A stretch of DNA of 64,000 bases, taken from assembly GCF_963921235.1 (NCBI RefSeq), contig NC_086109.1, forward strand, positions 1,302,001-1,366,000, in the 5' to 3' direction. The stretch's first letter is position 1; each line of letters opens with the position of its first letter. Below are positions 6,172 through 59,480 of this stretch, in pieces. The stretch comes from Mobula hypostoma. Taxonomy: Eukaryota. A program made the translations under genes and the position numbers. A model generated the notes under the pieces. That model searched no databases and was not told the DNA's origin. It saw only the letters and a list, made by a program, of their open reading frames with translations.

Positions 6172-6960
6172 GAAACATAGAAACATAGAAAATAGGTGCA
6201 GGAGTAGGCCATTCGGCCCTTCGAGCCTGCACCGCCATTCAGTACGATCATGGCTGATCATCCAACTCAGAACCCTGTACCAGCCTTCCCTCCATACCCC
6301 CTGATCCCTTTAGCTACAAGGGCCATATCTAACTCCCTCTTAAATATAGCCAATGAACTGGCCTCAACTGTTTCCTGTGGCAGAGAATTCCACAGATTCA
6401 CCACTCTCTGTGTGAAGAAGTTTTTCCTCATCTCGGTCCTAAAAGGCTTCCCCTTTATCCTGAAACTGTGACCCCTCGTTCTGGACTTCCCCAACATCGG
6501 GAACAATCTTCCTGCATCTAGCCTGTTCAATCCCTTTAGAATTTTGTACGTTTCAATAATATCCCCCCTCAATCTTCTAAATTCCAGCAAGTATAAGCCT
6601 AGTCGATCCAGTTTTTCATCATATGAAAGTCCTGCCATCCCAGGAATCAATCTGGTGAACCTTCTTTGTACTCCCTCTATGGCAAGAATGTCTTTCCTCA
6701 GATTAGGGGACCAAAACTGCACCAATACTCCAGGTGTGGTCTCACCAAGGCCTTGTACAACTGCAGTAGTACCTCCTTGCTTCTGTACTCGAATCCTCTT
6801 GCTATGAATGCCAGCATACCATTCGCCTTTTTCACCACCTGCTGTACCTGCATGCCCACTTTCAATGACTGGTGTATAATGACACCCAGATCTCGTTGCA
6901 CCTCCCCTTTTCCTAATCGGCCACCATTCTGATAATAATCTGTTTTCCTGTTCTTGACTC
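6172..6960 (-). mobile_element. Young CR1 3' fragment
   Basis: WSPNLRKDILAIEGVQRRFTRLIPGMAGL...; 3' UTR ending in an (agaaacat)n tail. Confidence 0.92.
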
Positions 6961-7436
6961 TTTGTCCTCCTTGTCAAAGGCCTTCTGAAAACCCAAGTAA
7001 GCAACATCCACTGACTCTTCTTTGTCCGTCCTGTTTGTTATTTCCTCAAAGAACTCCAACAGATTTCCCCCCAAGGAAACCATGCTGACTTTGTCCTACC
7101 TTAACATGTGCTTCCAAACCTGATCCTTAAAATAATTGACTCCAACATCTTCCCAACCACTGAAGTCAGATGCTAACTAGCCTATGATTTCCTTCCCTCT
7201 CTGCTGAAAGAATGGGGTGACATTTGCAATTTTTCAACCCTTCACAACCATTCCAGAATCTAGTGATTCCTGAAATATCATTATTAATGTCTCCATAATC
7301 TATCCACCACCTCTTTCGGAACTCTGGGGTATAGTCCATCGGGTCCAGTACTTGGACAACTGAAAAATATACGTCAGGTTGTCATTTATCGATTACAGCT
7401 CAGCAGTTGAAACCATCAGCCCAGAACCTTCAGCCC

Positions 7437-8958
7437 TCCTGGATGCATTAGTGATAATTTTTCAAAACTCATTAGATTCTGGACTAGTTCCTGAGGATTG
7501 GAGGGTGGCTAATGTAACCCCACTTTTTAAAAAAGGAGGGAGAGAGAAACCGGGGAATTATAGACCGGTTAGCCTAACGTCGGTGGTGGGGAAACTGCTG
7601 GAGTCAGTTATCAAGGATGTGATAACAGCACTTTGGAAAGCAGTGAAATCATCGGACAAAGTCAGCATGGATTTGTGAAAGGAAAATCATGTCTGACGAA
7701 TCTCATAGAATTTTTTGAGGATGTAACTTGTAGAGTGGATAGGGGAGAACCAGTGGATGTGGTATATTTGGATTTTCAAAAGGCTTTTGACAAGGTCCCA
7801 CACAGGAGATTAGTGTGCAAACTTAGAGCACACGTTATTGGGGGTAAGGTATTGGTGTGGGTGGAGAATTGGTTAGCAGACAGGAAGCAAAGAGTGGGGA
7901 TAAACGGGACCTTTTCAGAATGGCAGGCGGTGACTAGTGGGGTACCGCAAGGCTCAGTGCTGGGACCCCAGTTGTTTACAATATATATTAATGACTTGGA
8001 TGAGGGAATTAAATGCAGCATCTCCAAGTTTGCGGATGACACGAAGCTGGGTGGCAGTGTTAGCTGTGAGGAGGATGCTAAGAGGGTGCAGGGTGACTTG
8101 GATAGGTTGGGTGAGTGGGCAAATTCATGGCAGATGCAATTTAGTGTGGATAAATGTGAAGTTATCCACTTTGGTGGCAAAAATAGGAAAACAGATTATT
8201 ATCTGAATGGTGGCCGATTAGGAAAAGGGGAGGTGCAACAAGACCTGGGTTTCATTATACACCAGTCATTGAAAGTGGGCATGCAGGTACAGCAGGCGGT
8301 GAAAAAGGCGAATGGTATGCTGGCATTTATAGCGAGAGGATTCGAGTACAGGAGCAGGGAGGTACTACTGCAGTTGTACAAGGCCTTGGTGAGACCACAC
8401 CTGGAGTATTGGTGCAGTTTTGGTCCCCTAATCTGAGGAAAGACATTCTTGCCATAGAGGGAGTACAAAGAAGGTTCACCAGATTGATTCCTGGGATGGC
8501 AGGACTTTCATATGAAGAAAGACTGGATGAACTGGGCTTGTACTCGTTGGAATTTAGAAGATTGAGGGGGGATCTGATTGAAACGTATAAAATCCTAAAG
8601 GGATTGGACAGGCTAGATGCAGGAAGATTGTTCCCGATGTTGGGGAAGTCCAGAACGAGGGGCCACAGTTTGAGGATAGAGAGGAAGCCTTTTAGGACCG
8701 AGATTAGGAACAACTTCTTCACACAGAGAGTGGTGAATCTGTGGAATTCTCTGCCACAGGAAACAGTTGAGGCCAGTTCATTGGCTGTGTTTAAGAGGGA
8801 GTTAGATATGGCCCTTGTGGCTACGGGGGTCAGGGGGTATGGAGGGAAGGCTGGGGCGGGGTTCTGAGTTGGATGATCAACCATGATCATAATAAATGGC
8901 GGTGCAGGCTCGAAGGGCCGAATGGCCTTGTCCTGCACCTATTTTCTATGTTTCTATG
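7437..8958 (+). mobile_element. Young CR1, 5'-truncated RT with frameshifts
   Basis: ORFs 7379-7678, 7633-8436 and 8409-8867 give [33 protein letters not shown]; (tatgtttc)n tail. Confidence 0.95.
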
Positions 8959-10304: not shown

Positions 10305-10619
10305 CATGCACCTCCAATGAAATGCTCTCTGTATCTTCATGTCCCGAATCTGCAGTAACAGTCACCTGGTAGTGACCGGCGTCTTGCATCTGTAGATCGT
10401 GGATTTCCAAACTGAAGTTACTGGGATGAAAGGTTTCCCTTTGCTGGTACTCTCCAAAATACCTTGTAGTGTTGACCGAATGCCTTACTATCCTTTCTTC
10501 ACGTTCTACTCGTCTCCACACAACGTCATAGACGTCCGGTCTGACTGGGATCCGAGGACGTAAGGAGACCGAGTGTCTCCGAGTTCCGGTCACAGTGGTA
10601 GGAGGAGCCCCAGTCCTAT
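10305..10619 (-). CDS. IgV exon V2, CD2/SLAM/CEACAM-like, no intradomain cysteines (315 nt, phase 1-1)
   Basis: Acceptor ctgtctcctcAG at 10621-10620; donor G|GTGAGT at 10304. Encodes (D)RTGAPPTTVTGTRRHSVSL...VVWRRV...FSLEIHDLQMQDAGHYQVTV...LEVH, with the C-strand Trp and LxIxxLxxxDAGxY V-set motif. Confidence 0.92.
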
Positions 10620-10719
10620 CTGAGGAGACAGGAGGAGGCAGTCAGAAGGTGAGTTCAGAGTGAGAATCAAATCAGGTTAAATATCACTGGCGTATGTTGT
10701 GAAACTTGCTGTTATGTGA

Positions 10720-11870
10720 TAGCGAGTGTCTTTGGTGACGTACCAGATCTCCCAGTTAAGACAGCGGAAGGGAGGATGTTGCGTGGTTTAAAAGTTCATT
10801 TAAGAGAACGTGACTTTCGTGTCCCAATACCGACTATTCTGCTGGTAAGTGTACAATCTCTGGTAAATAAAATCGATAATATCACAGCAAGAATGCTGGA
10901 CCAGAAGGACTTTAAAAAGCACTTGTGTTATTTGTTTAACGGTGGATTCTTGGATGCAGTGATACAGTTTAGTGCCTATATAATTCACCGTCAAGATAGA
11001 ACAGCTGAATCTTTCGAAGACAGAGGAGGTGGAGTTTGCTTTATCTGCTTGTGGTGTACAAATGTGGTGGCGCTGTCATAGTCCTGCCCACCTGACCTGA
11101 AACATCTCACGATCAGATGCGCCGCAGAGGTTTACAGCCATCATTTTAGTCATGGCATACATCCCACCTCTAGCCCTTGTCAAACAGGCTCTAGAAGAAC
11201 TGAGCAGTGTTATCAATGGGCATAAAATAGCATACCCCAATGCCTTCATTATCACTTTGGGGAATTTTAACTAGGCCAGTTTGGAAATGTCTCTAAACAA
11301 TTATTACTAACTTATCACTTGTTGAACCAGGGAAACCAACACACTTGACCACTGTCATACCAAATTCCGTGGATGAACCAGGGAATTCTTAGTCTGCTGA
11401 GGATTGGATCTGTGGCATTCAAGTCTAGTAACGCAGGACTATACATGAAGGCCAGGCACGAATTATGGAGAGCTAGCTCAAGAGTAAAGGAACATTTCTG
11501 AACAAGGTTAGAGGCCGAATCAGATGCACGTGGACTCTGGCCGTGATTGCAGGCCATTACCTCCTCCAAGGGGAAACCCAACATCCTAAATGGCAGTGAT
11601 GCTTCATTCCCAGATGAGCTTAATGCCTTTTATACCCACTTTGAAACAGAATAAAACTACAGCTATGAGGATCCTTGCAGCACCTGGAGACCCTGTGATC
11701 TCTGTCTCGGAGGCCGGCATAAGACTGTCTTTCATGGGGGTGAACCCTTGCAAGGTGACAAGCCCTGATGGAGTGCCTGGTAGGGCTCTGAAAACTTGTG
11801 CTAGTCAACTGGCAGGTGTGTTCAAAGACATTTTCACCCTCTCACTGCTACAGTCAAAGTTCCTCTGGGT
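10720..11870 (+). mobile_element. Degenerate Rex1/Babar-type LINE (endonuclease to RT start)
   Basis: [48 protein letters not shown]. Confidence 0.75.
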
Positions 11871-11879
11871 GTATCTATC

Positions 11880-12290
11880 CTGTGCAATGTCTTCGCAGTT
11901 TTTAAATTAAGGTTGAATTTTAGGCTGACTTTGATGTTATCTTTGAAGCATTTTCTTTGCAAACCAGGGGTTTGCTGACTATCCTCTAACTGGGAGTAAA
12001 GGATCTGTTTGGAGGGACGTGAGTTGTGCATCTGGATGATATGACCTATCCATTGGAGTTGGTGTTGCTTTATCATGGTGGAGATGATGTTCATATCAGA
12101 CGCCTCCAGGACACTGGTGTTGGTGAGTCTGTCCTTCCCGCTGATAGGATCTTTGGTGGGGTTGCCCCAGGGCTTTCAGACACCTCCTGTAGGTGGCCTA
12201 TGATTCAGCTACATAAAGTAATGAAGAATGCCTGCTCTTTAAGTCAAAAGTTTTGCTTGGACTTGTACAGTGGCTGGTTGAGTGGTGAGG
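11880..12290 (-). mobile_element. RTE-clade LINE 3' remnant
   Basis: LQWIGHIIQMHNSRPSKQILYSQLE...QRKCFKDNIK resembles the RTE C-terminus (LRWxGHVxRM...KQILY...RKRFKD). Confidence 0.7.
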
Positions 12291-12581
12291 CAACAGTAAC
12301 TTCCACTCAATGTAAGCAAGATAAAGGACCAGCCCCGACCTCATTGGGCAGGCTTGGGCGTCTGAATCTGGTGTTCACCTCTCTCCAATGGAAGGTGACT
12401 AATCCAGGATGGGACTGTCTCAGCCCCACTACTCTGGCACCGTGAGCCCAGCTCAGGACAGCTCACTCAATGGGGTTCACTAAACAGGGCAACGTACACG
12501 ATTTGACCTCACCCATTAGTTAGGGATGTCTGAAGGGCCAATGAAAATCGAGCCCCTCCCCCTCTGTAGTGTTACACTCAC

Positions 12582-12890
12582 CATTTACCTCCAATTGGAC
12601 TCTTCTTAGAGTCTGTGTCCCTGAGGCTGCTGTAATGATCACCTCATAATCACCAGCATCCTCTCTCCGTAGATCACTGATTTCCAGATTAAAGTTCCCA
12701 GGATGAAGTGTTATCCTTCGCTGGTATTCCTTGGGACCGAAGTATTCAATATTCCCATTTGAGCTTTGTGCAACTCTGCTTCCGGATGATACCCGTCTCC
12801 ACTCAATGTCAATAAAGTCCGGTCCGACTGGAATCCCAGGAGGTAAGGAGACTGAGTGTCCCCGAGCTCCGATCACAGTGATGGGGGAAG
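12582..12890 (-). CDS. IgV exon V1, CD2/SLAM/CEACAM-like, no intradomain cysteines (309 nt, phase 1-1)
   Basis: Acceptor cttgtctcctcAG at 12892-12891; donor G|GTGAGT at 12581. Encodes (A)SPITVIGARGHSVSLPPGI...IEWRRV...FNLEISDLRREDAGDYEVII...LEVN. Confidence 0.92.
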
Positions 12891-13099
12891 CTGAGGAGAC
12901 AAGAGGAGACAGTCAGCAGGTGAACTCAGTGAGTGCAGGAGGAGTCAGAGCTGGGAGTATCACAGCCACGGGAGCAGACTAGTTAACTGATGTCACATGT
13001 ATTGAGATACAGTGAAAAACCTGTCTTGCACGCTGTGCATACAGATCAGATCATTACACAGTGCATTGATCTGGCTCAATGTAAAACAATAATGTGGCA

Positions 13100-25300: not shown

Positions 25301-28300
25301 CCCCAACATCTCTCTAACCACTCTCTCCCTCTGTCACCTAAACACCCCCCAACATCTCTCTAACCACTCTCTCCCTCTGTCCCATAAACACCCCCCAACA
25401 TCTCTCTAACCACTCTCTCCCTCTGTCACCATAAACACCCCCTCAACATCTCTCTAACCACTCTCTCCCTCTGTCACCATAAACACCCCCCCAACATCTC
25501 TCTAACCACTCTCTCCCTCTGTCACCATAAACACCCCCCAACATCTCTCTAACCACTCTCTCCCTCTGTCACCATAAACACCCCCTCAACATCTCTCTAA
25601 CCACTCTCTCCCTCTGTCACCCTAAACACCCCCCAACATCTCTCTAACCACTCTCTCCCTCTGTCACCATAAACACCCCCTCAACATCTCTCTAACCACT
25701 CTCTCCCTCTGTCACCCTAAACACCCCCTCAACATCTCTCTAACCACTCTCTCCCTCTGTCACCATAAACACCCCCCCAACATCTCTCTAACCACTCTCT
25801 CCCTCTGTCACCATAAACACCCCCTCAACATCTCTCTAACCACTCTCTCCCTCTGTCACCCTAAACACCCCCTCAACATCTCTCTAACCACTCTCTCCCT
25901 CTGTCACCATAAACACCCCCCAACATCTCTCTAACCACTCTCTCCCTCTGTCACCGTAAACACCCCCTCAACATCTCTCTAACCACTCTCTCCCTCTGTC
26001 ACCCTAAACACCCCCTCAACATCTCTCTAACCACTCTCTCCCTCTGTCACCATAAACACCCCCTCAACATCTCTCTAACCACTCTCTCCCTCTGTCACCA
26101 TAAACACCCCCCCAACATCTCTCTAACCACTCTCTCCCTCTGTCACCATAAACACCCCCTCAACATCTCTCTAACCACTCTCTCCCTCTGTCACCATAAA
26201 CACCCCCCCAACATCTCTCTAACCACTCTCTCCCTCTGTCACCATAAACACCCCCCCAACATCTCTCTAACCACTCTCTCCCTCTGTCACCCTAAACACC
26301 CCCTCAACATCTCTCTAACCACTCTCTCCCTCTGTCACCATAAACACCCCCCAACATCTCTCTAACCACTCTCTCCCTCTGTCACCATAAACACCCCCTC
26401 AACATCTCTCTAACCACTCTCTCCCTCTGTCACCATAAACACCCCCTCAACATCTCTCTAACCACTCTCTCCCTCTGTCACCCTAAACACCCCCTCAACA
26501 TCTCTCTAACCACTCTCTCCCTCTGTCACCATAAACACCCCCCCAACATCTCTCTAACCACTCTCTCCCTCTGTCACCATAAACACCCCCTCAACATCTC
26601 TCTAACCACTCTCTCCCTCTGTCACCATAAACACCCCCTCAACATCTCTCTAACCACTCTCTCCCTCTGTCACCATAAACACCCCCTCAACATCTCTCTA
26701 ACCACTCTCTCCCTCTGTCACCCTAAACACCCCCTCAACATCTCTCTAACCACTCTCTCCCTCTGTCACCATAAACACCCCCTCAACATCTCTCTAACCA
26801 CTCTCTCCCTCTGTCACCATAAACACCCCCCCAACATCTCTCTAACCACTCTCTCCCTCTGTCACCATAAACACCCCCCCAACATCTCTCTAACCACTCT
26901 CTCCCTCTGTCACCATAAACACCCCCTCAACATCTCTCTAACCACTCTCTCCCTCTGTCACCATAAACACCCCCCAACATCTCTCTAACCACTCTCTCCC
27001 TCTGTCACCATAAACACCCCCCAACATCTCTCTAACCACTCTCTCCCTCTGTCACCATAAACACCCCCTCAACATCTCTCTAACCACTCTCTCCCTCTGT
27101 CACCCTAAACACCCCCCCAACATCTCTCTAACCACTCTCTCCCTCTGTCACCCTAAACACCCCCTCAACATCTCTCTAACCACTCTCTCCCTCTGTCACC
27201 ATAAACACCCCCTCAACATCTCTCTAACCACTCTCTCCCTCTGTCACCATAAACACCCCCCTCAACATCTCTCTAACCACTCTCTCCCTCTGTCACCCTA
27301 AACACCCCCTCAACATCTCTCTAACCACTCTCTCCCTCTGTCACCATAAACACCCCCTCAACATCTCTCTAACCACTCTCTCCCTCTGTCACCATAAACA
27401 CCCCCTCAACATCNNNNNNNNNNNNNNNNNNNNNNNNNNNNNNNNNNNNNNNNNNNNNNNNNNNNNNNNNNNNNNNNNNNNNNNNNNNNNNNNNNNNNNN
27501 NNNNNNNNNNNNNNNNNNNNNNNNNNNNNNNNNNNNNNNNNNNNNNNNNNNNNNNNNNNNNNNNNNNNNNNNNNNNNNNNNNNNNNNNNNNNNNNNNNNN
27601 NNNNNNNNNNNNNTCTCCCTCTGTCACCATAAACACCCCCCAACATCTCTCTAACCACTCTCTCCCTCTGTCACCATAAACACCCCCTCAACATCTCTCT
27701 AACCACTCTCTCCCTCTGTCACCATAAACACCCCCCAACATCTCTCTAACCACTCTCTCCCTCTGTCACCATAAACACCCCCCAACATCTCTCTAACCAC
27801 TCTCTCCCTCTGTCACCATAAACACCCCCCAACATCTCTCTAACCACTCTCTCCCTCTGTCACCATAAACACCCCCCAACATCTCTCTAACCACTCTCTC
27901 CCTCTGTCACCATAAACACCCCCTCAACATCTCTCTAACCACTCTCTCCCTCTGTCACCATAAACACCCCCTCAACATCTCTCTAACCACTCTCTCCCTC
28001 TGTCACCATAAACACCCCCTCAACATCTCTCTAACCACTCTCTCCCTCTGTCACCATAAACACCCCCCCAACATCTCTCTAACCACTCTCTCCCTCTGTC
28101 ACCATAAACACCCCCCAACATCTCTCTAACCACTCTCTCCCTCTGTCACCATAAACACCCCCTCAACATCTCTCTAACCACTCTCTCCCTCTGTCACCAT
28201 AAACACCCCCCCAACATCTCTCTAACCACTCTCTCCCTCTGTCACCATAAACACCCCCTCAACATCTCTCTAACCACTCTCTCCCTCTGTCACCATAAAC

Positions 28301-31300
28301 ACCCCCTCAACATCTCTCTAACCACTCTCTCCCTCTGTCACCCTAAACACCCCCCCAACATCTCTCTAACCACTCTCTCCCTCTGTCACCATAAACACCC
28401 CCTCAACATCTCTCTAACCACTCTCTCCCTCTGTCACCATAAACACCCCCCAACATCTCTCTAACCACTCTCTCCCTCTGTCACCATAAACACCCCCCAA
28501 CATCTCTCTAACCACTCTCTCCCTCTGTCACCATAAACACCCCCCAACATCTCTCTAACCACTCTCTCCCTCTGTCACCATAAACACCCCCTCAACATCT
28601 CTCTAACCACTCTCTCCCTCTGTCACCATAAACACCCCCCTCAACATCTCTCTAACCACTCTCTCCCTCTGTCACCCTAAACACCCCCCAACATCTCTCT
28701 AACCACTCTCTCCCTCTGTCACCATAAACACCCCCTCAACATCTCTCTAACCACTCTCTCCCTCTGTCACCATAAACACCCCCTCAACATCTCTCTAACC
28801 ACTCTCTCCCTCTGTCACCATAAACACCCCCCCAACATCTCTCTAACCACTCTCTCCCTCTGTCACCATAAACACCCCCCCAACATCTCTCTAACCACTC
28901 TCTCCCTCTGTCACCATAAACACCCCCGCAACATCTCTCTAACCACTCTCTCCCTCTGTCACCATAAACACCCCCCTCAACATCTCTCTAACCACTCTCT
29001 CCCTCTGTCACCATAAACACCCCCCAACATCTCTCTAACCACTCTCTCCCTCTGTCACCATAAACACCCCCCCAACATCTCTCTAACCACTCTCTCCCTC
29101 TGTCACCATAAACACCCCCTCAACATCTCTCTAACCACTCTCTCCCTCTGTCACCATAAACACCCCCCCAACATCTCTCTAACCACTCTCTCCCTCTGTC
29201 ACCATAAACACCCCCCAACATCTCTCTAACCACTCTCTCCCTCTGTCACCATAAACACCCCCTCAACATCTCTCTAACCACTCTCTCCCTCTGTCACCAT
29301 AAACACCCCCCAACATCTCTCTAACCACTCTCTCCCTCTGTCACCATAAACACCCCCTCAACATCTCTCTAACCACTCTCTCCCTCTGTCACCATAAACA
29401 CCCCCTCAACATCTCTCTAACCACTCTCTCCCTCTGTCACCATAAACACCCCCTCAACATCTCTCTAACCACTCTCTCCCTCTGTCACCATAAACACCCC
29501 CCCAACATCTCTCTAACCACTCTCTCCCTCTGTCACCATAAACACCCCCTCAACATCTCTCTAACCACTCTCTCCCTCTGTCACCATAAACACCCCCTCA
29601 ACATCTCTCTAACCACTCTCTCCCTCTGTCACCATAAACACCCCCTCAACATCTCTCTAACCACTCTCTCCCTCTGTCACCATAAACACCCCCCCAACAT
29701 CTCTCTAACCACTCTCTCCCTCTGTCACCATAAACACCCCTCAACATCTCTCTAACCACTCTCTCCCTCTGTCACCATAAACACCCCCTCAACATCTCTC
29801 TAACCACTCTCTCCCTCTGTCACCATAAACACCCCCTCAACATCTCTCTAACCACTCTCTCCCTCTGTCACCATAAACACCCCCCTCAACATCTCTCTAA
29901 CCACTCTCTCCCTCTGTCACCATAAACACCCCCCAACATCTCTCTAACCACTCTCTCCCTCTGTCACCATAAACACCCCCCAACATCTCTCTAACCACTC
30001 TCTCCCTCTGTCACCATAAACACCCCCCAACATCTCTCTAACCACTCTCTCCCTCTGTCACCATAAACACCCCCTCAACATCTCTCTAACCACTCTCTCC
30101 CTCTGTCACCATAAACACCCCCCAACATCTCTCTAACCACTCTCTCCCTCTGTCACCATAAACACCCCCCCAACATCTCTCTAACCACTCTCTCCCTCTG
30201 TCACCATAAACACCCCCCCAACATCTCTCTAACCACTCTCTCCCTCTGTCACCATAAACACCCCTCAACATCTCTCTAACCACTCTCTCCCTCTGTCACC
30301 ATAAACACCCCCTCAACATCTCTCTAACCACTCTCTCCCTCTGTCACCATAAACACCCCCTCAACATCTCTCTAACCACTCTCTCCCTCTGTCACCATAA
30401 ACACCCCCCAACATCTCTCTAACCACTCTCTCCGTCTGTCACCATAAACACCCCTCAACATCTCTCTAACCACTCTCTCCCTCTGTCACCATAAACACCC
30501 CCCCAACATCTCTCTAACCACTCTCTCCCTCTGTCACCCTAAACACCCCCCCAACATCTCTCTAACCACTCTCTCCCTCTGTCACCATAAACACCCCCCC
30601 AACATCTCTCTAACCACTCTCTCCCTCTGTCACCATAAACACCCCCTCAACATCTCTCTAACCACTCTCTCCCTCTGTCACCATAAACACCCCCCCAACA
30701 TCTCTCTAACCACTCTCTCCCTCTGTCACCCTAAACACCCCCCCAACATCTCTCTAACCACTCTCTCCCTCTGTCACCATAAACACCCCCTCAACATCTC
30801 TCTAACCACTCTCTCCCTCTGTCACCATAAACACCCCCTCAACATCTCTCTAACCACTCTCTCCCTCTGTCACCCTAAACACCCCCCAACATCTCTCTAA
30901 CCACTCTCTCCGTCTGTCACCATAAACACCCCCTCAACATCTCTCTAACCACTCTCTCCCTCTGTCACCATAAACACCCCTCAACATCTCTCTAACCACT
31001 CTCTCCCTCTGTCACCATAAACACCCCCCAACATCTCTCTAACCACTCTCTCCCTCTGTCACCCTAAACACCCCCTCAACATCTCTCTAACCACTCTCTC
31101 CCTCTGTCACCATAAACACCCCCCCAACATCTCTCTAACCACTCTCTCCCTCTGTCACCCTAAACACCCCCTCAACATCTCTCTAACCACTCTCTCCCTC
31201 TGTCACCCTAAACACCCCCCCAACATCTCTCTAACCACTCTCTCCCTCTGTCACCCTAAACACCCCTCAACATCTCTCTAACCACTCTCTCCCTCTGTCA

Positions 31301-31352
31301 CCATAAACACCCCCCAACATCTCTCTAACCACTCTCTCCGTCTGTCAGCATA
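19381..31352. repeat. 48-bp minisatellite array, ~245 visible copies, ~12 kb
   Basis: Unit aacatctctctaaccactctctccctctgtcaccataaacaccccctc (C23 A12 T12 G1). Period checked at 20221/20269. Variants ccataaac/ccctaaac and variable C-run. 200-N gap at 27414-27613. Confidence 0.98.
27414..27613. other. Assembly gap (200 N) inside the minisatellite
   Basis: N run flanked by repeat units on both sides. Confidence 1.
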
Positions 31353-32040
31353 AGCAACCCCTCACTCCATCACTGGTGCACATTTGCTACAGAGTGAACC
31401 ATCTGCAAAATGCCGTGTTGTAACTCACCCAGTTTCGCAATCCAGCACCTCTCCCACCCAGTGAGACAAAAAGATTTTGACAGTGGAACAGCTCCAGAGG
31501 CAGGCTACGCTGCATATCCTTCAGCATCCTCACTGTGAAATATGTCACCGGACCTTCAGCACCACCGTGTTTAAATCCTGCAACTCTCAGCGCAACTGCT
31601 TTGTGGGAGCACCTTCACTAGGACGCAGCGGTTTAAACACAGAACATAGCAATCCTGCAGCACAATACAGGCCCTTCAGCCCACAATGCTGTGCCGAACG
31701 TGTAGTTACTTCAGAAATTACCTTGGGTTACCCATCGTCCTCTACTTTTCTGAGCTCCATTCCTCCAGGAGCCCCAAGAAAGACAATATCTTATCCGCCT
31801 CCACCACCTTTGGCCGTCAGCTCATTCCACGCACCCTCCACTCTTGTGAAAAAACGTACCCCTGACATCTCCTCTGTACCTACTTCCAAGCACATTAAAA
31901 CTGTGGCCTCTCGTGTTAGCCATTTTAGCCCTGGGATAAAGCCTGTATGAGGCAGCTCACACCCCACCATCTCCAGACTGATGACGGATGGACAATACAG
32001 TCTGGCCTTGACTATGCTGACAATATATTGCTAAATTGAA
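31353..32040 (+). mobile_element. Same old LINE remnant, right flank, split by a CR1 tail (31636-31948, minus strand)
   Basis: cactggtgcaca...ccatctgcaaaatgc...aactcacc, then gcagcggttt|CR1|gaggcagctcaca. The paralogous copy at 47305-47460 is uninterrupted. Confidence 0.55.
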
Positions 32041-32147
32041 TAATCGTTGAAGAGCTGTTGGCTCTGAATACCCAGGGCGGCTGTGGAGTGGGGAGCTGGT
32101 GTCAGGTCGTTGCTTCTCTCAGGGTGAGGTGTCAGTGAAACTCTTTG

Positions 32148-32209
32148 TCAAATGGTGGCAGGAAGAGGGTGCGGCTCAGAACACTTCTGGTTAACAGGTG
32201 TAGAGATCT
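32148..32209 (-). other. Candidate short terminal/poison exon, copy 1
   Basis: Acceptor ccattctctgacAG, 189 nt below the leader donor. Phase-1 frame reads (E)ISTPVNQKCSEPHPLPATI*. Acceptor and stop are kept in the paralog at 47566-47627. Confidence 0.3.
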
Positions 32210-32398
32210 CTGTCAGAGAATGGAGGAGCATTCAGGTCAGGCGGTGAGAGACAGAAAACAGCTCAAGGTCAGTGTACTGATTCAGGGTGAGACTCGGGAA
32301 TTGCCTCCACTACCCTGGAATCCTCCTGTACACACCGAAACTTTGGATGAGCCTCACACACGTCTCAACAAAAGGTGATCATCACAATATAATCTTAC

Positions 32399-32459
32399 CC
32401 ACAAAGTTGAAGGGTTGGCTAAACAGCACGACGAACAGGAACCAAAATAAGTTCGACAT
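32399..32459 (-). CDS. Signal-peptide (leader) exon, phase 1
   Basis: gaagATG (A at -3) encoding MSNLFWFLFVVLFSQPFNFV, then G|GTAAGA donor. 61 coding nt, phase-compatible with X1, V1 and V2; lies just downstream of an ISRE cluster. Confidence 0.78.
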
Positions 32460-32504
32460 CTTCACTATTTATTCAAGCTTTGACTACCCGATGGTTTGAA
32501 AGTT

Positions 32505-32625
32505 TGACTCAGTTTGGATCCCAGTTAAGAGAAACTGAAAGCTGAAAGCGAACTGAAAGCAGTTCAGCCAATCTTAACCAATATCAGTTACAGGAAGGAA
32601 AGCTGCAATATCTGACACGTGACAC
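32505..32625 (-). promoter_or_regulatory. Proximal promoter: tandem ISRE/IRF-E sites, two inverted CCAAT boxes, AP-1, ETS and E-box cores
   Basis: 32531-32559 GAAACTGAAAGCTGAAAGCGAACTGAAAG (sense strand contains TTTCAGTTTC). CCAAT at 32568 and 32578, TGACTCA ~32505, CAGGAAG ~32591, CACGTG ~32616. The ISRE begins ~70 nt upstream of the ATG. Confidence 0.68.
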
Positions 32626-32715: not shown

Positions 32716-33800
32716 AAGTCAAGTCAAGTTTACTTATATAGCACATTCAAAAACAACCTGTGTTGACCAAGGTGCTGTACAGATCAGAGCAGATAGCTAA
32801 AATCACAGATACAGGAAACAGAGACATAACCAACAAGGCAAACAGCTTATCGGCACAGAAGAAACAACAGTAGGGCCGAGGCACAAGCCAAACATTAGCC
32901 ACATCAGGAAGATTCAAATGCTAGTGAATAAAGGTAAGTTTTGAGCTGGATTTAAAAGAGTCAGTGGAGGGGGCAGATCTGATAGGGAGGGGAATGCTGT
33001 TCCACAGTCTCGGGTCTACAGTAGCAAAGGTGCGGTTACCCCAAGCTTAAATTTAGATCGCGGGACAGCCAGGAGCCCCAAGTCAGCCGACCTGTGGGAT
33101 CTGGAAGTAGAATAAGAGGTTAGAAGGTCTGCGATATAAGGGGGAGGGCCAGCCCATTTAGGGCTTTATAAACAAACAGAAGAATCTTAAAATCAATCCT
33201 GAACCATACTGGTAGTCAGTGGAGAGAGGCCAGGATAGAAGTAATGTGGTCCCTCTTCCGGGCACCTGTCAGGAGCCTGGCTGCAGCGTTCTGGACCAGT
33301 TGCAGACAGGACAGGGACGACTGACTAATCCCAGTATACAGGGAGTTGGAGTAGTCCAAGCGGGAGGATATAAGGGCATGGATGACTTTCTCGAGATCTT
33401 TGAAAGAGAGAAACTGCTTGATTTTGGCAATAGTACGAAGCTGGAAAAAAACTGGCTTTCACTACTGCATTAACTTGCCTGTCAAACTTAAGGGTGGAAT
33501 CAAATATCACACCAAGGGATTTGACGTGGGGTTTGACAAGGGCGGACATGTTACCAAGACCGCTGGTAATCACTTTGATGGAGTCAGGGGGGCCAAATAG
33601 GACAACTTCAGACTTGTCTTCATTCAGCTGTAGGAAGTTTTGTGCCATCCAACACTTCATGTCCTCAAGGCAGTTCATGAGGCTGACGAGATTTGACTGG
33701 TCATTTGGTTTCGGGGGAGATAAAGCTGTGTGTCGTCAGCATAACAGTGGAAAGAAATGTCGTAATCTTAAATGATTTGACCGAGGGGAAGCATGTATAT
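32716..33800 (-). mobile_element. L2-clade LINE RT 3' part
   Basis: CWMAQNFLQLNEDKSEVVLFG, VKSLGVIFDSTLKF; (ttgac)n tail. Confidence 0.88.
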
Positions 33801-34385
33801 AAAGAAACGAATGTAGTCTCCCGGTGGTGAGGGTTAATTGTGGACATGACTATGGTAGGGAACATTATGATAGGGCAGACTACAGGAAACAATTCCCCAC
33901 CTGGGAGGCAGATACAATTTAGAGGGTACAGATTCAGGGAAATTGGTAAATGATTTGGAGGGGACTTGAGAGGGCCCAGAGTGTGGGGAGTAGTTGAACG
34001 ACATGGCCAGAGGCAGAGCCACTGACAATGTTTCATAAGTGTCTGAATTCTGGGCCAGTTCACTCCCCCAGGCGCAGAAGGCTATGGGATAAATCAGAGT
34101 GATTAAAAAGTACAGCATAGAAACAGGCCCTTTGGCCATCAAGGAGTCATGAAAAGGTACAGCACAGAAAATACTGGTCAGTTTGGACACGATGGGCTGA
34201 ATGGTCTCTTGCAATCAGGTTTGCTAGAGCTGTTGGGAGTGGTGTGAACTAATATGGCAGGACACTGGGAACAGGTATGAAAGAGCTGAGGATCAGCCAG
34301 CAGGTTTACACGAGGAAGATGGGTGTAATATAAATGTAAGGAAGGACCAGCCAATGATTGGGTACAAATGCAGTCAGAGCAAAGG

Positions 34386-38299: not shown

Positions 38300-41200
38300 A
38301 GCTAATGTCTAATCCAATTTACCACCTCTCCATGTATACCTAGCGACTGAATTTTCCTAACTAACCTCCCATGCGGGACCTTGTCAAAGGCCTTACTGAA
38401 GTCCATGTAGACAATATCCACTGCCTTCCCTTCATCCACTTTCCTGGTAACCTCCTCGAAAAACTCCAACAGATTGGTCAAACATGACCTACCACGCACA
38501 AAGCCATGTTGACTCTCCCTAATAAGCCCCTGTCTATCCAAATGCTTGTAGATTCTGTCTCTTAGTACTCCCTCCAATAACTTACCTACGACTGATGTTA
38601 AACTCACCGGCCTATAATTTCCCGGATTACTTTTCGATCCTTTTTTAAACAACGGAACCACTCTCCAATCCTCCGGCACTTCACCCGTAGACAGCGACAT
38701 TTTAAATATTTCTGCTAGGGCCCCCACAATTTCAACACTAGTCTCCATCAAGGTCCGAGGGAACACCCTGTCAGGTCCCGGGGATTTATCCACTTTAATT
38801 TTCCTCAAGACAGCAAGCACCTCCTCCTTTTTAATCTGTACAGTTTTCATGGTCTCATTACTTGATTCCCTCAATTCCATAGATTTCATGCCAGCTTCCT
38901 TAGTAAATACAGACGCAAAAAAACTAATTAAGATCTCCCCCATCTCCTTTGGTTCCGCACAAAGCCGACCACTCTGATCTTCAAGAGGACCAATTTTATC
39001 CCTTACAATCCTTTTATATAGAAACATAGAAAATAGGTGCAGGAGTAGGCCATTCGGCCCTTCGAGCCTGCACCGCCATTTATAATGATCGTGGCTAATC
39101 ATCCAACTCAGATCCCCGCCCCAGCCTTCCCTCCATACCCCCTGACCCCCGTAGCCACAAGGGCCATATCTAACTCCCTCTTAAATATAGCCAATGAACT
39201 GGCCTCAACTGTTTCCTGTGGCAGAGAATTCCACAGATTCACCACTCTCTGTGTGATCCTAATCTCGGTCCTAAAAGGCTTCCCCTCTATCCTCAAACTG
39301 TGGCCCCTCGTTCTGGACTTCCCCAACATCGGGAACAATCTTCCTGCATCTAGCCTGTCCAATCCCTTTAGGATCTTATACGTTTCAATCAGATCCCCCC
39401 TCAATCTTCTAAATTCCAACGAGTACAAGCCCAGTTCATCCAGTCTTTCTTCATATGAAAGTCCTGCCATCCCAGGAATCAATCTGGTGAACCTTCTTTG
39501 TACACCCTCTATGGCAAGGATGTCTTTCCTCAGATTAGGGGACCAAAACTGCACACAATACTCCAGGTGTGGTCGCACCAAGGCCTTGTACAACTGCAGT
39601 AGTACCTCCCTGCTCCTGTACTCGAATCCTCTCGCTATAAATGCCAGCATACCATTCGCCTTTTTCACTGCCTGCTGTACCTGCATGCCCACTTTCAGTG
39701 ACTGGTGTATAATGACACCCAGGTCTCGTTGCAGCTCCCCTTTTCCTAATCGGCCACCATTCAGATAATAATCTGTTTTCCTATTTTTGCCACCAAAGTG
39801 GATAACTTCACATTTATCCACATTAAATTGCATCTGCCATGAATTTGCCCACTCACCCAACCTATCCGAGTCACCCTGCATCCTCTTAGCATCCTCCTCA
39901 CAGCTAACACTGCCACCCAGCTTCATGTCATCCGCAAACTTGGAGATGCTGCATTTAATTCCCTCATCCAAGTCATTAATATATATTGTAAGCAACTGGG
40001 GTCCCAGCACTGAGCCTTGCGGTACCCCACTAGTCACCACCTGCCATTCTGAAAAGGTCCCGTTTATTCCCACTCTTTGCTTCCTGTCTGCTAACCAATT
40101 CTCCACCCACACCAATACCTTACCCCCAATACCGTGTGCTTTAAGTTTACACACTAATCTCCTGTGTGGGACCTTGTCAAAAGCCTTTTGAAAATCCAAA
40201 TATACCACATCCACTGGTTCTCCCCTATCCACTCTACTAGTTACATCCTCAAAAAATTCTATGAGATTCGTCAGACATGATTTTCCTTTCACAAATCCAT
40301 GCTGACTTTGTCCGATGATTTCACCGCTTTCCAAATGTGCTGTTATCACATCCTTGATAACTGACTCCAGCAGTTTCCCCACCACCAACGTTAGGCTAAC
40401 CGGTCTATAATTCCCCGGTTTCTCTCTCCCTCCTTTTTTAAAAAGTGGGGTTACATTAGCCACCCTCCAATCCTCAGGAACTAGTCCAGAATCTAACGAG
40501 TTTTGAAAAATTATCACTAATGCATCCACTATTTCTTGCGCTACTTCCTTAAGCTCTTAATATACTTGTAAAAGCTCTTTGGATTATGCTTCACTTTGAC
40601 TGTAAGACAACCTCATGCCTTCTTTTAGCCCTCCTGATTTCTTTCTTATGTATTTTCTTGCACTTCTTATACTCCTCAAGCACCTGATTTACCCCCTGTT
40701 TCCTATACATTTCATACAACTCCCTCTTCTTTATCAGAGTTGCAATATCCCTTGAGAACCAAGGTTCCTTATTCGTATTCAATTTGCCTTTAATCCTGAC
40801 AGGAACATGCAAACTCTGCACTCTCAAAATTTCCCCTTTGAAGGCTTCCCACCTACCAATCACATCTTTGCCAGAGAACAACCTGTCCCAATCCACGCTT
40901 TTTAGATCCTTTCTCATTTCTTCAAATTTGGCCTTCTTCCAGTTCAGAACCTCAACCCTAGGACCAGATCTATCCTTGTCCATGATCAAATTGAAACTAA
41001 TGGTGTTATGATCACTGGAACCAAAGTGCTCCCCTACACAGACTTCCGTCACTTGCCCTAACTCGTTTCCTAACAGGAGATCCAATATTGCATCCCCTTT
41101 AGTTGGTCCCTCTATATATTGATTTAGAAAACTTTCCTGAACACATTTTACAAACTCTAAACCATCTAGACCCCTAACAGTATGGGAGTCCCAATCAATG

Positions 41201-41990
41201 TATGGAAAATTAAAATCTCCTACTACCACAACTTTATGTTTCCTGCAGTTGCCTGCTATCTCTCTGCAGATTTGCTCTTCCAAGTCTCGTTGACTATTGG
41301 GTGGTCTGTAATACAATCCCACTAATGTGGCCATACCTTTCCTGTTTCTCAGCTCCATCCATAAGGACTCAGTAGACAAGCCCTCTAATCTGTCCTGCCT
41401 GAGCACTGCTACAATATTTTCCCTAACAAGCAATGCTACTCCCCCACCTTTCATTCCTCTGTCTCGATCACATCTGAAACATCGGAACCCTGGAATATTA
41501 AGCTGCCAGTCCTGCCCCTCCTGTAGCCAAGTTTCACTAATTGCTACAACATCATAATTCCACGTGTCAATCCACGCCCTCAACTTCCCCGCAATACTCC
41601 TAGCATTGAAATATATACACCTCAGAAGATTTTTACCACCACTCACAACCTTTCTATCAGCGGATTTGCTTAAACTTTCAACATCATTTATTTTCACCCC
41701 AGCCACACTGTCAGCTCTGGCACTCTGGTTCCCATCCCCCTGCAAATCTAGTTTAAAGCCTCCCCAATAGCACTAACAAACCTCCCTGAAAGGATATTGG
41801 TCCCCCTGTGGTTCAAGTGTAACCCGTCTCTCTTGTACAGGTCCCACCTGCCCCAGAAGAGGTCCCAATGATCCTGAAATCTGAAACCCTGCCCCCTACA
41901 CCAGTTCCTCAGCCACTTGTTCCTCCTCCAGAGCATCCTATTCCTACCCTCACTGGCACCTAACACTCCCAACCTTTGTGTCATCAGCAA
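38300..41990 (-). mobile_element. CR1 with ORF1 SGNH-esterase end, APE endonuclease and RT start, split by a younger CR1
   Basis: 41748-42020: DHWDLFWGRWDLYKRDGLHLN. 40591-41745: YFNARSI, AISETWL, VVGDFNFP, SSDHN. 38302-~39000 continues into RT (YMDFSKAFDKVPH). Confidence 0.9.
39018..40555 (-). mobile_element. Young 5'-truncated CR1 with an uninterrupted 473-aa RT frame
   Basis: ORF 39108-40529 with full RT motifs (FADDMKLGG); close paralog of 7437-8958. Confidence 0.95.
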
Positions 41991-54957: not shown

Positions 54958-55374
54958 ACTCCGACGTCAAGTTGGAGTTTCACTTTCAGAGAATGGTCTG
55001 ACGTGATCTAGTTAGGTAACGGATTTTTAGCGTTCTTTTTGTTTAGCTTTTGGTGTTCAATAAATGAGCTACCTCGGGCTTTTCTTGAACATTAAACTTC
55101 TCCGCCGTTTTATTTATGAAAACCTACAAGAGCAATCCTCAATCCCAAACCTTTTCTCAGTCAGAGACACGCCGTTGTCACAATCTGAAACTGTTCACAG
55201 ACTCGCCATACTTTTAATATGGGACTCACTGCTATTTAGGTCCACCCTTATCACAGATCCCCCCCCCTCACAGATTCACCTCCTGCAACAGAGCCAAAAG
55301 GTAAAGGATTGAGAGTCATTGAATGGTTTACTGTATATAATTTTTTTGAATAAAATATATTTTGAAATTTTAAA

Positions 55375-57384: not shown

Positions 57385-58025
57385 ACTATACAAGTTTATT
57401 TACAACACATATACACAAAGGTACAGACAGTCAATATTTCCAAGACAGTAAGTACATTCAAAATATGATTGCTACCGTCTGTAAAACAGTCAGTACCACG
57501 GGGGGTGGGGACCACCTCTCCGGGAAATCCCCCACTGTACCCATGACCAAAGCGTGCTCCCTCTCCAAGGACAGCCGGGCACGAATGTATCCTCGTGGAA
57601 GGTGAGGTGGTCGGTCCGGGGAAACGAGTTCCACCTTTCGCCGCCGAGACCCGTGAATGGCCGTCTTGGCCAGGCCCGGGACCAAGCCCAACAGGAGATC
57701 CTCCTCTCGTCTCACCCCCTTCCGAACTGGGTGCCCGCAGATGAGGAGAGCGGGACTAAAGTGCAGCCAGAACCTTAACAGCAGCACCCTGAGACACTCG
57801 AAGAGCGGCTGCAACCTCTCACATGGCGTGTACGCGAGGTACACTGACTCCTCCCGCCCGCAGAATGGACAGCTGGACGGGGTGTCAGTAAACCTGCTCA
57901 GGAACCCGTTGTCCGGGACTGACCGATACAACACCTTCCACCCCAGGTCCCCAACGGCACGGAACAACGGAACAGCACGGTGGGCAACCCCGCGAGTGAC
58001 TCAACGCCCACACCTTCCTCCGTAC
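57385..58025 (-). mobile_element. Tx1-type ORF2 C-terminal fragment, copy B
   Basis: First ~87 aa of the ORF are identical to copy A; same junction with the repeat. Confidence 0.88.
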
Positions 58026-59480
58026 AGATTCACCGCCTGCCACAGAACCATCCCCCGTCACAGACCCACCCCCGTCACAGACCCATCTCCCGTCACAGAC
58101 CCGTCCCCCGTCACAGACCTGTCCCCATCATAGACCCACCTCCCGTCACAGACCCGTCCCCATCACAGCCCCACACCCCGACACAGACCCACCTCCTGTC
58201 ACAGACCCGTCCCCCTGTTACAGACCCGTCCCCCGTCACAGACCCACATCCTGTCACAGAACCGTCACCCGCCACAGACCTACACCCCGTCACAGACCCA
58301 TCCCCTGTCACAGACCCGTCCCCCGTCACAGCCCCACACCCCGACACAGACCCACCTCCTGTCACAGACCCGTCCCCCTGTCACAGACCCGTCCCCCGTC
58401 ACAGACCCGTCCCCCGTCACAGACCCACATCCTGTCACAGAACCGTCACCCGCCACAGACCTACACCCCGTCACAGACCCATCCCCTGTCACAGACCCGT
58501 CCCCCGTCACAGACCACATCCTGTCAAAGAACCACCTCCTGTCAAAGACCCATCTCCTGTCACAGACCCGTCCTCCGTCACAGAACCACCTCCTGTCACA
58601 GACCCGTCCCCTGTCACAGACCCGTACCCCGTCACAGACCCGTACCCCGTCACAGACCACATCCTGTCAAAGAACCACCTCCTGTCAAAGACCCATCTCC
58701 TGTCACAGACCCGTCCTCCGTCACAGAACCACCTCCTGTCACAGCCCCTCACCCCGTCACAGATACACCTCCTGTCACAGACCCGTACCCGGTCATAGAC
58801 CCGTCCCCCGTCACAGACCACATCCTGTCAAAGAACCACCTCCTGTCAAAGACCCATCTCCTGTCACAGACCCGTCCTCCGTCACAGAACCACCTCCTGT
58901 CACAGAGCCGTCCCCTGTCACAGACCCGTACCCCGTCATAGACCCGTCCCCCGTCACAGACCCACCTCCTGTCACAGACCCACCTCCCGTCACAGACCCG
59001 TCCCCGTCACAGACCTACACCCCGTCACAGACCCATCCCCTGTCAGAGACCCATCCCCTGTCACAGACCCACACCCCGTAACAGACCCACACCCCGTCAC
59101 AGACCCGTCCCCTGTCACAGACCCGTCCCCCGTCACAGACCACATCCTGTCAAAGACCCACCTCCTGTCACAGACCCGTCCCCCGTCACAGACCCACATC
59201 CTGTCAAAACCCACCACCTGTCACAGACCCGTCCCCCGTCACAGTCCCAAACCCTGTCACAGACTCGTTTCCCGTCATAGACCCGTCCCCCATCACAGAC
59301 CCACGCCCCGTTACAGACCCACTCCCTGTCACAGATCCATCTCCTGTCACAGTCCCAGCTACGTCGCAGCCCGTGCCCGGACATTGACCCACTCAATGTC
59401 ATAGACACACCACGACGCAGCCTGCACAGATTCTGCCCCGCCCTGTCACATTCCCACCCAATCACATCCCCACCCAGTCA
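58025..59480. repeat. Expanded ~18-bp minisatellite with higher-order repeats
   Basis: The variant cassette agaccacatcctgtcaaagaaccacc recurs at 58511, 58654 and 58815 (143- and 161-bp spacing). Confidence 0.92.

Follow-up and report, generated by a model that had tools for sequence, protein, structure and literature searches.

The receptors of the SLAM/CD2 family, such as SLAMF5/CD84, SLAMF6, SLAMF4/2B4 and CD2/CD48/CD58, possess V-set domains without the B–F disulphide, and cysteine-free V domains indeed need no such bond. Several V domains of this type can also occur in series, as seen for SLAMF3/Ly9 and for the batoid 'Ly-9-like' multi-V proteins. In elasmobranchs, the expansion of SLAM/CD2-like genes is very large and almost unstudied, with the papers searched offering only a passing mention of slamf genes within the elasmobranch MHC. 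A member of this expansion, LOC134355867 of Mobula hypostoma, shares the V-set domains without a B–F disulphide, and likewise carries two of them in series. Unlike the SLAM/CD2 receptors, however, it lacks a C2-set domain, an ITSM and any C-terminal transmembrane (TM) helix or GPI signal, whilst it does harbour a hydrophobic-plus-basic module that separates the leader from the first of the V domains, as well as an amphipathic tail. Resemblance of the product to SLAM/CD2 proteins is confined to the two cysteine-free V domains.

The stretch of DNA analysed (the window, 64 kb in length) contains exons 1–5 of this gene on its minus strand. The initial annotation had described a hidden gene, which proved incorrect, as the features belong to a RefSeq locus whose 323 aa product (XP_062922441.1, labelled "uncharacterized protein") matches the window with 100 % identity over five exons by tblastn. 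All of the sequence features that had been named are present at their positions, and the proposal of a single gene comprising the leader as well as the two V exons is borne out, with all three mapping to XP_062922441.1. Exon usage is taken herein from RefSeq models (XP_ accessions), according to which there are six coding exons with every internal junction in phase 1, ordered in the mRNA as leader, exon 2, exon 3, V1, V2 and exon 6 tail. The coding sequence spans 33,410 bp, and its stop codon lies ~950 bp outside the window, beyond base 1. It is likely that this already annotated yet unnamed gene is a rearranged offshoot of a large batoid SLAM/CD2-like family.

The two V domains are encoded by exon 4 (V1, 12582–12890, 309 nt) and exon 5 (V2, 10305–10619, 315 nt), both on the minus strand and of phase 1/1, and the window contains no further V exons. 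As first described, both are open, flanked by AG/GT splice sites and devoid of cysteines; the two share 51 % identity, and their flanks are also homologous. AlphaFold2 models both domains with pLDDT >90. Their assignment as V-set domains withstands a profile comparison, with scores of 29.7 and 32.9 bits against a Pfam gathering cut-off of 26, and V2 additionally matches Receptor_2B4 (26.7 against a cut-off of 21). The CD2/SLAM character previously suggested for them is also upheld, as the top sequence matches amongst solved structures are SLAMF5 (1e-7), CD2, SLAMF6 and CD48. The closest proteins overall are batoid products named 'Ly-9-like' or 'SLAM family member 5-like' and encoded on the same chromosome, with CD48-like names also found amongst the relatives, and the V domains nest amongst those of the family in a tree.

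Identity of the V domains to those of batoid three-V proteins (Hemitrygon, Mobula; P0001, P0157) is 44–56 %. The latter still end in a TM helix followed by a cytoplasmic tail, whereas LOC134355867 has a TM-derived exon at its 5′ end; Ly9, for its part, alternates V and C2 domains, unlike LOC134355867. Foldseek searches with the modelled V–V pair return JAML, CD226/DNAM-1 and VCBP3 as top matches (E 1e-13 to 6e-17), but with only 16–18 % identity and TM-scores of 0.26–0.29 when normalised by query, and searches with the whole model return generic tandem-V matches only. As judged from the modelled structure, this resemblance is that of tandem V domains in general, with no family link.

Within the tree, V2 of the three orthologues considered below forms one clade (support 98/96), whilst V1 of the same three is not resolved. 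With the V2 clade supported in this way, the split between V1 and V2 is older than the Mobula–Pristis divergence. This bears on whether the V exons might serve as alternative first domains, giving leader–V1 or leader–V2 transcripts, for which their shared 1/1 phase and homologous flanks would speak. Given the age of the split, and with the annotated products of three species holding V1 and V2 in series, such an arrangement is highly improbable.

The coding part of exon 1 (32399–32459, minus strand) is the leader exon of the family, consisting of an ATG at 32459, 20 codons in all (MSNLFWFLFVVLFSQPFNFV) and one further base, and it matches residues 1–21 of XP_062922441.1 with 100 % identity by tblastn. 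The 20-codon hydrophobic leader ending G|GTAAGA that had been reported is thus read at 32459–32399, with the exon ending at 32399. When both strands were scanned for an ATG combined with a hydrophobic core and a donor of phase 1, this was the sole one of 13 candidates to map to the annotated protein. The start of intron 1 in Pristis is homologous to that of a canonical paralogue. In Mobula, most of this intron is filled by a 12 kb satellite array of 48-bp units (19381–31364; 251 copies with 96 % matches by TRF), and the locus is generally crowded with LINE debris in addition to the satellite. Both assembly gaps also lie within intron 1, at 18581–19162 (gap 1, adjoining the array) and 27414–27613 (gap 2, inside it), and hence no reading frame crosses either. 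In the Pristis protein, no residues are added from the leader to exon 2, which makes an exon concealed by a gap unlikely; gap 1 may nonetheless contain one.

The initial annotation joined the leader directly to V1 (32399>12890), overlooking two exons that, in the annotated transcript, place 64 conserved residues between them. Exon 2 (16906–17046, minus strand, 141 nt, phase 1/1) encodes residues 21–67, comprising a hydrophobic stretch followed by the basic cluster RKKWRSRK and then a helix, and exon 3 (16114–16164, minus strand, 51 nt, phase 1/1) encodes residues 68–84. Both match XP_062922441.1 with 100 % identity by tblastn, have readable splice sites and are conserved in M. birostris and Pristis. 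With these exons included, the N-terminus is not the plain secretory one that had been supposed, as residues 1–33 form an uncharged hydrophobic stretch of 33 residues, after which comes a net charge of +6 and the RKKWRSRK cluster. No Pfam family is matched by the N-terminal module (residues 1–86/88), a protein search restricted to this region returned the query alone, and nothing of use came from the ESM Atlas. Long N-terminal extensions of other paralogue models were also compared, and are unrelated to the module. Between Mobula and Pristis, exons 2 and 3 together show a dN/dS of 0.48 with frame and splice sites kept, which argues that they are coding sequence of a product under selection.

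These observations weigh upon the possibility that the leader is instead spliced straight to V1 (32399>12890), yielding a cleaved signal peptide and an interferon-inducible, secreted or surface, two-V receptor of CD2/SLAM-like type. As all exons are of phase 1/1, skipping of exons 2–3 would preserve the frame; moreover, the leader exon is the signal-peptide exon of the family and the V domains are of extracellular receptor type. Against this, RefSeq offers one model per species, and in all three species (3/3) this model includes exons 2–3, which retain frame and splice sites at the dN/dS given above; the product also lacks the C-terminal anchor, the C2 domain and the ITSM that would make it a receptor. 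This form of the gene is accordingly regarded as unlikely.

With regard to the origin of the module, an intron element directly 5′ of exon 2 (17049–17127, minus strand) displays 75 % identity (blastn, E 5e-9) to an element upstream of the TM exon of a Pristis paralogue, and the same element sits immediately 5′ of the TM exon in canonical family members. Across the 164 kb examined, it is found only 5′ of TM exons, of exon 2 and of exon 6. As shown by this homology of the flanking introns, exons 2 and 6 both descend from the family TM exon. When the exon 2 and exon 6 peptides are compared with TM peptides of paralogues, their protein-level similarity does not reach significance (z at most 2.7), and for this reason the ancestry rests on the flanking element. 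Descent of the gene as a whole from the CD2/SLAM family is likewise indicated at the nucleotide level, by an intron 1 and a TM-exon-upstream element shared with canonical Pristis paralogues, as well as by the nesting of its V domains in the tree and by its relatives on the same chromosome.

Exon 6, the last coding exon, lies ~0.9 kb past window base 1 and encodes a tail of 31 residues. This C-terminal region is basic and charged (net +4 to +6), having lost its hydrophobicity, and forms an amphipathic helix (muH 0.59/0.63, matched by at most 5/1000 shuffles). The product carries no C-terminal TM helix or GPI signal, with all windows of KD19 ≥1.6 being N-terminal, and nor does it contain a C2 domain, consisting of the N-terminal module, V, V and the 31-residue tail. 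A regular expression for the ITSM (TxYxxV/I/L) finds none in the three orthologues, as against one or two in each of the canonical paralogues checked (4/4). Similarly, neither the window nor the Pristis locus contains a C2 exon, whilst paralogues do carry C2, and a search for family C2, TM or cytoplasmic exons elsewhere within the 64-kb window found none.

Orthologues with an identical six-part build are present in M. birostris (88 % identity) and in the sawfish Pristis pectinata (54 %); amongst annotated stingray and skate proteins, none was seen. Collinearity of the Pristis locus with the window extends to the introns, which are 68–79 % identical where they can be aligned. Values of dN/dS range from 0.41 (V1 against Pristis) to 0.70 (V2), with an overall figure of 0.58, and it is this range, set against a dS of ~0.5–0.9, that argues for a reading frame kept under constraint. 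One might otherwise view the locus as a decaying relic, in which duplicated V exons and scrambled copies of the TM exon have been joined by an annotation pipeline, with no functional product. The odd exon order, the LINE debris and 12-kb satellite, the distant terminal exon and the relaxed dN/dS of V2 would all be in keeping with decay. Despite this, an intact frame of 323–330 codons, all splice sites and the six-part build have survived between two batoid orders at that dS, and the non-Ig parts are conserved as well as the V domains, rendering a relic very unlikely.

A core promoter block occurs 70–140 bp 5′ of the ATG (32529–32600, minus strand), and aligns with the promoter in Pristis. It contains an ETS-like TTCCTGT (32596–32590), two inverted CCAAT boxes (ATTGG; 32582–32578 and 32572–32568) and an IRF-E/ISRE-type cluster (32560–32529) of two (A/G)AACTGAAAGC units spaced 18 bp apart. 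The ISRE cluster and paired CCAAT boxes that had been noted just upstream of the leader are therefore present in the sequence. On the plus strand, 32529–32562 reads GAGAAACTGAAAGCTGAAAGCGAACTGAAAGCAG, with a perfect GAAACTGAAAGC and, 18 bp off, a further copy, GAACTGAAAGC. Nowhere else in the window does the motif recur, AAASTGAAAGC occurring once in 64 kb, in this promoter, against 0.03 expected by chance. Pristis has three units where Mobula has two, at the same position and with the same 18-bp spacing; these begin CAAA, and the strict GAAANNGAAA is absent there. Identity between the two promoter blocks peaks locally at 70–77 %, which is a modest footprint only, as alignable introns are already 68–79 % identical.

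The IRF motif is confined to these two orthologous promoters, being unique in both loci, and is absent from the 350–400 bp upstream of two canonical paralogue start codons. The tandem GAAA-NN-GAAA or AAGTGAAAG units, within ~120 bp of the start codon and conserved between the orthologues, resemble in motif those of interferon-stimulated gene promoters, with their ISG15/ISG54-type ISRE or PRDI-type AAGTGA repeats. IRF-E/ISRE motifs can also serve constitutive IRF8/PU.1 expression. We infer that transcription would be driven by factors of the IRF family, be it through induction by interferon or infection, or as leukocyte expression of the IRF8/PU.1 type.

In this architecture, a copy of the TM exon thus stands ahead of the V exons, directly after the family leader, whilst a second derivative at the C-terminus has lost its hydrophobicity to become a basic amphipathic helix. 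The N-terminal hydrophobic region would target the protein to the ER, where it would presumably be membrane-associated. That the basic cluster stays cytosolic, such that the V–V module and tail face the cytosol, is given close to an even chance. A lumenal V–V module, secreted or at the surface following signal cleavage or skipping of exons 2–3, is a serious contender that nonetheless falls somewhat below even, and the outcomes besides these, lack of function included, are together improbable. N-glycosylation sequons occur at residues 77, 237 and 255, and would be glycosylated only in a lumenal arrangement. Their density of 0.6–0.9 per 100 aa, compared with 1.3 for the median paralogue, is not a strong enough indicator to settle the topology. 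The complete interpretation based on the cytosolic arrangement is put forward tentatively, and is rather more likely to be wrong than right in full. It holds that LOC134355867 encodes an inside-out, SLAM/CD2-derived tandem-V protein that would be tethered to membrane at both ends with its V domains in the cytosol, driven by an IRF/interferon-type promoter, and acting as an intracellular effector or sensor of Ig-V type that batoids would have conserved from a time preceding the split of Mobula and Pristis.

LOC134355867 illustrates how exon shuffling within a cluster of receptor genes may generate a new architecture, with the anchor exon duplicated 5′ and the old anchor turned into an amphipathic helix. 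The absence of the C2 domain and signalling tail, together with an IRF-type promoter specific to the orthologue group, forms part of this same novelty. Should the V domains be cytosolic, the gene would represent a rare instance in which a domain of extracellular immune receptors was recruited to work inside the cell; secretion of the V domains would make the product a candidate soluble ligand, or decoy, of receptors encoded nearby.

An exhaustive HMMER search with the V1 domain as query, together with a follow-up search, led to LOC134355867 of Mobula hypostoma, whose 323 aa product (XP_062922441.1, "uncharacterized protein" in RefSeq) matches the window with 100 % identity; the gene supposed to be hidden is therefore already annotated. 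All of its exons lie on the minus strand. In the leader exon (residues 1–21, match 32459–32397), the ATG at 32459 is followed by 20 hydrophobic codons, and the exon ends at 32399 with the donor G|GTAAGA. V1 occupies exon 4 (residues 85–187, 12890–12582) and V2 exon 5 (residues 187–292, 10619–10305), whilst the C-terminal 31 residues fall outside the window, the CDS span of 33,410 bp placing the stop codon approximately 950 bp past window base 1. The initial annotation described leader, promoter elements and V exons correctly and was right to assign leader and V domains to one gene, but it joined them directly, overlooking two intervening coding exons that are evident from both the protein match and the DNA reading. 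These are exon 2 (residues 21–67, match 17047–16907; bounds on the DNA reading 17046–16906, 141 nt) and exon 3 (residues 69–84, match 16162–16115; bounds 16164–16114, 51 nt), both phase 1/1, their acceptors being polypyrimidine-AG and their donors GTAAG. By this reading of protein and DNA, leader and V exons are linked as a single gene through exons 2 and 3, and the supposed 19.5-kb intron is in fact three.

Both V exons are open, cysteine-free and phase 1/1 with good splice sites, share 51 % identity, and are the only V-type exons in the 64-kb window. Each passes Pfam V-set, and V2 additionally passes Receptor_2B4, a model specific to CD2/SLAM; by sequence, the best solved-structure relatives of V1 are SLAMF5 (1e-7), CD2, SLAMF6 and CD48. 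Their proposed identity as cysteine-less IgV exons of CD2/SLAM type is thereby borne out. A tree built from 74 V domains of the family unites V2 of the three orthologues in one clade (support 98/96), so that the V1/V2 duplication predates the Mobula–Pristis split; V1 orthology is left unsettled by the same tree. The V1 of the Pristis orthologue (16675–16995 of its locus) clusters with both V domains of another Pristis gene model, LOC127581059, not with Mobula V1, which suggests gene conversion or recent duplication inside the sawfish cluster. Literature searches turned up no dedicated paper on elasmobranch SLAM/CD2 genes; one study of the MHC mentions that slamf genes are located within it in sharks (PMC10751288).

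The M. birostris protein (88 % identical) and Pristis pectinata LOC127580912 (54 %) contain the same parts, among them the tail and the segment encoded by exons 2 and 3. All six exons map to the Pristis locus with canonical splice sites and phases as in Mobula, and the two loci are collinear over exons and many intron blocks at 68–79 % identity. Nei–Gojobori dN/dS between Mobula and Pristis is 0.48 for exons 2 and 3, 0.41 for V1, 0.70 for V2 and 0.58 overall, with dS of ~0.5–0.9. At such divergence an unconstrained 320-codon frame would be lost, which identifies LOC134355867 as a functional coding gene; that it is instead a non-functional relic is unlikely given this conservation. On the same comparison, exons 2 and 3 are part of the selected product. 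In Pristis, intron 3 holds a tandem array (15262–15694 of the locus) with units ~32 or 65 bp apart, its Mobula counterpart (window 15809–15966) being a single stretch of ~160 bp.

Most of intron 1 is occupied by a 12-kb satellite array (19381–31364) of 251 copies of a C/T-rich 48-bp unit with 96 % matches. Two N runs lie within this intron, one adjoining the array (18581–19162) and the other breaking it (27414–27613), and no reading frame crosses either. An exon hidden in these gaps is unlikely, as the sawfish orthologue has zero additional residues between leader and next exon. A related repeat occurs downstream of, and outside, the Pristis gene (33619–33893 of that locus), making this satellite family common to two batoid orders. 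Elsewhere, long LINE ORFs (endonuclease-like, 384 aa; reverse transcriptase, 473 aa) lie at 38302–41745 on the minus strand, with many related RT fragments (e.g. 13–1203, 6267–8867, 16285–16794) and a LINE 3′ fragment inside the 741-bp intron separating exons 2 and 3. A 272-aa ORF of degenerate PVTDPS-type repeats (57657–58798, plus strand) has the look of a short tandem repeat that happens to read as an open coding frame.

The promoter region 70–140 bp upstream of the ATG contains a GAAA-type repeat cluster with a perfect GAAACTGAAAGC (32529–32562, plus-strand reading), two ATTGG boxes (32582–32578 and 32572–32568, minus strand) and a TTCCTGT element. Mobula and Pristis promoters align, with identity peaking at 70–77 % over the CCAAT and IRF block, a level about equal to that of ordinary introns between these species. 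Three copies of AAASTGAAAGC are present across the 36.7 kb of the Pristis locus, each 68–114 bp 5′ of the ATG and with 18-bp spacing, the units starting CAAA, not GAAA. The 64-kb window holds one exact copy (0.03 expected by chance), at the corresponding promoter site, and a second copy with one mismatch lies at a distance of 18 bp. The two canonical paralogue promoters compared have CCAAT and/or ETS-like elements and lack AAASTGAAAGC within 350–400 bp of their start codons. Within the window GAAA(G/C)TGAAA(G/C) is matched exactly at just one other site, 54977–54987 (minus strand, GAAAGTGAAAC), which is isolated, with no leader-like or family exons nearby. Motifs of the ISRE/IRF-E or PRDI-like AAGTGAAAG class bind IRFs, and LOC134355867 is probably under IRF regulation; on sequence, the cluster would fit either interferon induction, as first proposed, or IRF8/PU.1-type leukocyte expression.

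The product lacks the C2 domain and C-terminal hydrophobic segment, and has no ITSM, a motif present in 4/4 canonical paralogues checked. Exon 1 appears to be the family signal-peptide exon, the start of intron 1 also being common to a paralogue. In two canonical Pristis SLAM-like genes the transmembrane exon is immediately preceded by an element of ~130 nt (L003 25032–25163 and L002 20783–20858, their respective loci). It recurs directly 5′ of exon 2 in the Pristis orthologue locus (14602–14717, 86 % identity) and in the window (17127–17049, 75 %), and directly 5′ of Pristis exon 6 (26401–26527, 88 %), with no further copies in the 164 kb examined. We infer that exons 2 and 6 both derive from the family transmembrane exon, on position and flanking DNA, as peptide-level similarity is not significant. 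Exon 2 would have retained the hydrophobic stretch and juxtamembrane basic cluster, and exon 6 would have come to encode an amphipathic helix and then a stop codon.

Residues 1–33 in Mobula are uncharged and hydrophobic and precede RKKWRSRK (net +6); in Pristis, 31 uncharged residues precede a net +3 across the next 15. No Pfam family matches this N-terminal module, and no relatives were detected beyond the three orthologues. An AlphaFold2 model built with a 30-sequence alignment places helices at 3–13 and 20–38, interrupted at a conserved S-x-P, and short helices at 44–56 and 62–70; it predicts both V domains at pLDDT >90 and, in the C-terminal tail, a helix spanning 296–320. The basic tail is strongly amphipathic (muH 0.59 and 0.63; matched by ≤5/1000 shuffles). 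Two standard topogenic rules, namely the positive-inside rule and the tendency of a long uncharged segment at the N-terminus to promote translocation of that end, suggest together with the ancestry of exon 2 that the basic cluster is kept cytosolic. There is then a nearly even chance that the disulphide-free V–V module and its tail would reside in the cytosol. The hydrophobic stretch of exon 2 is short in Mobula (13–15 residues). Should the signal be cleaved and the chain fully translocated, or exons 2–3 be skipped, the outcome would be a lumenal or secreted V–V protein, a possibility only slightly less likely. LOC134355867 can confidently be regarded as a conserved, annotated and rearranged derivative of the SLAM/CD2 family, its product being predicted, with similar confidence, to associate with membranes via its N-terminus.
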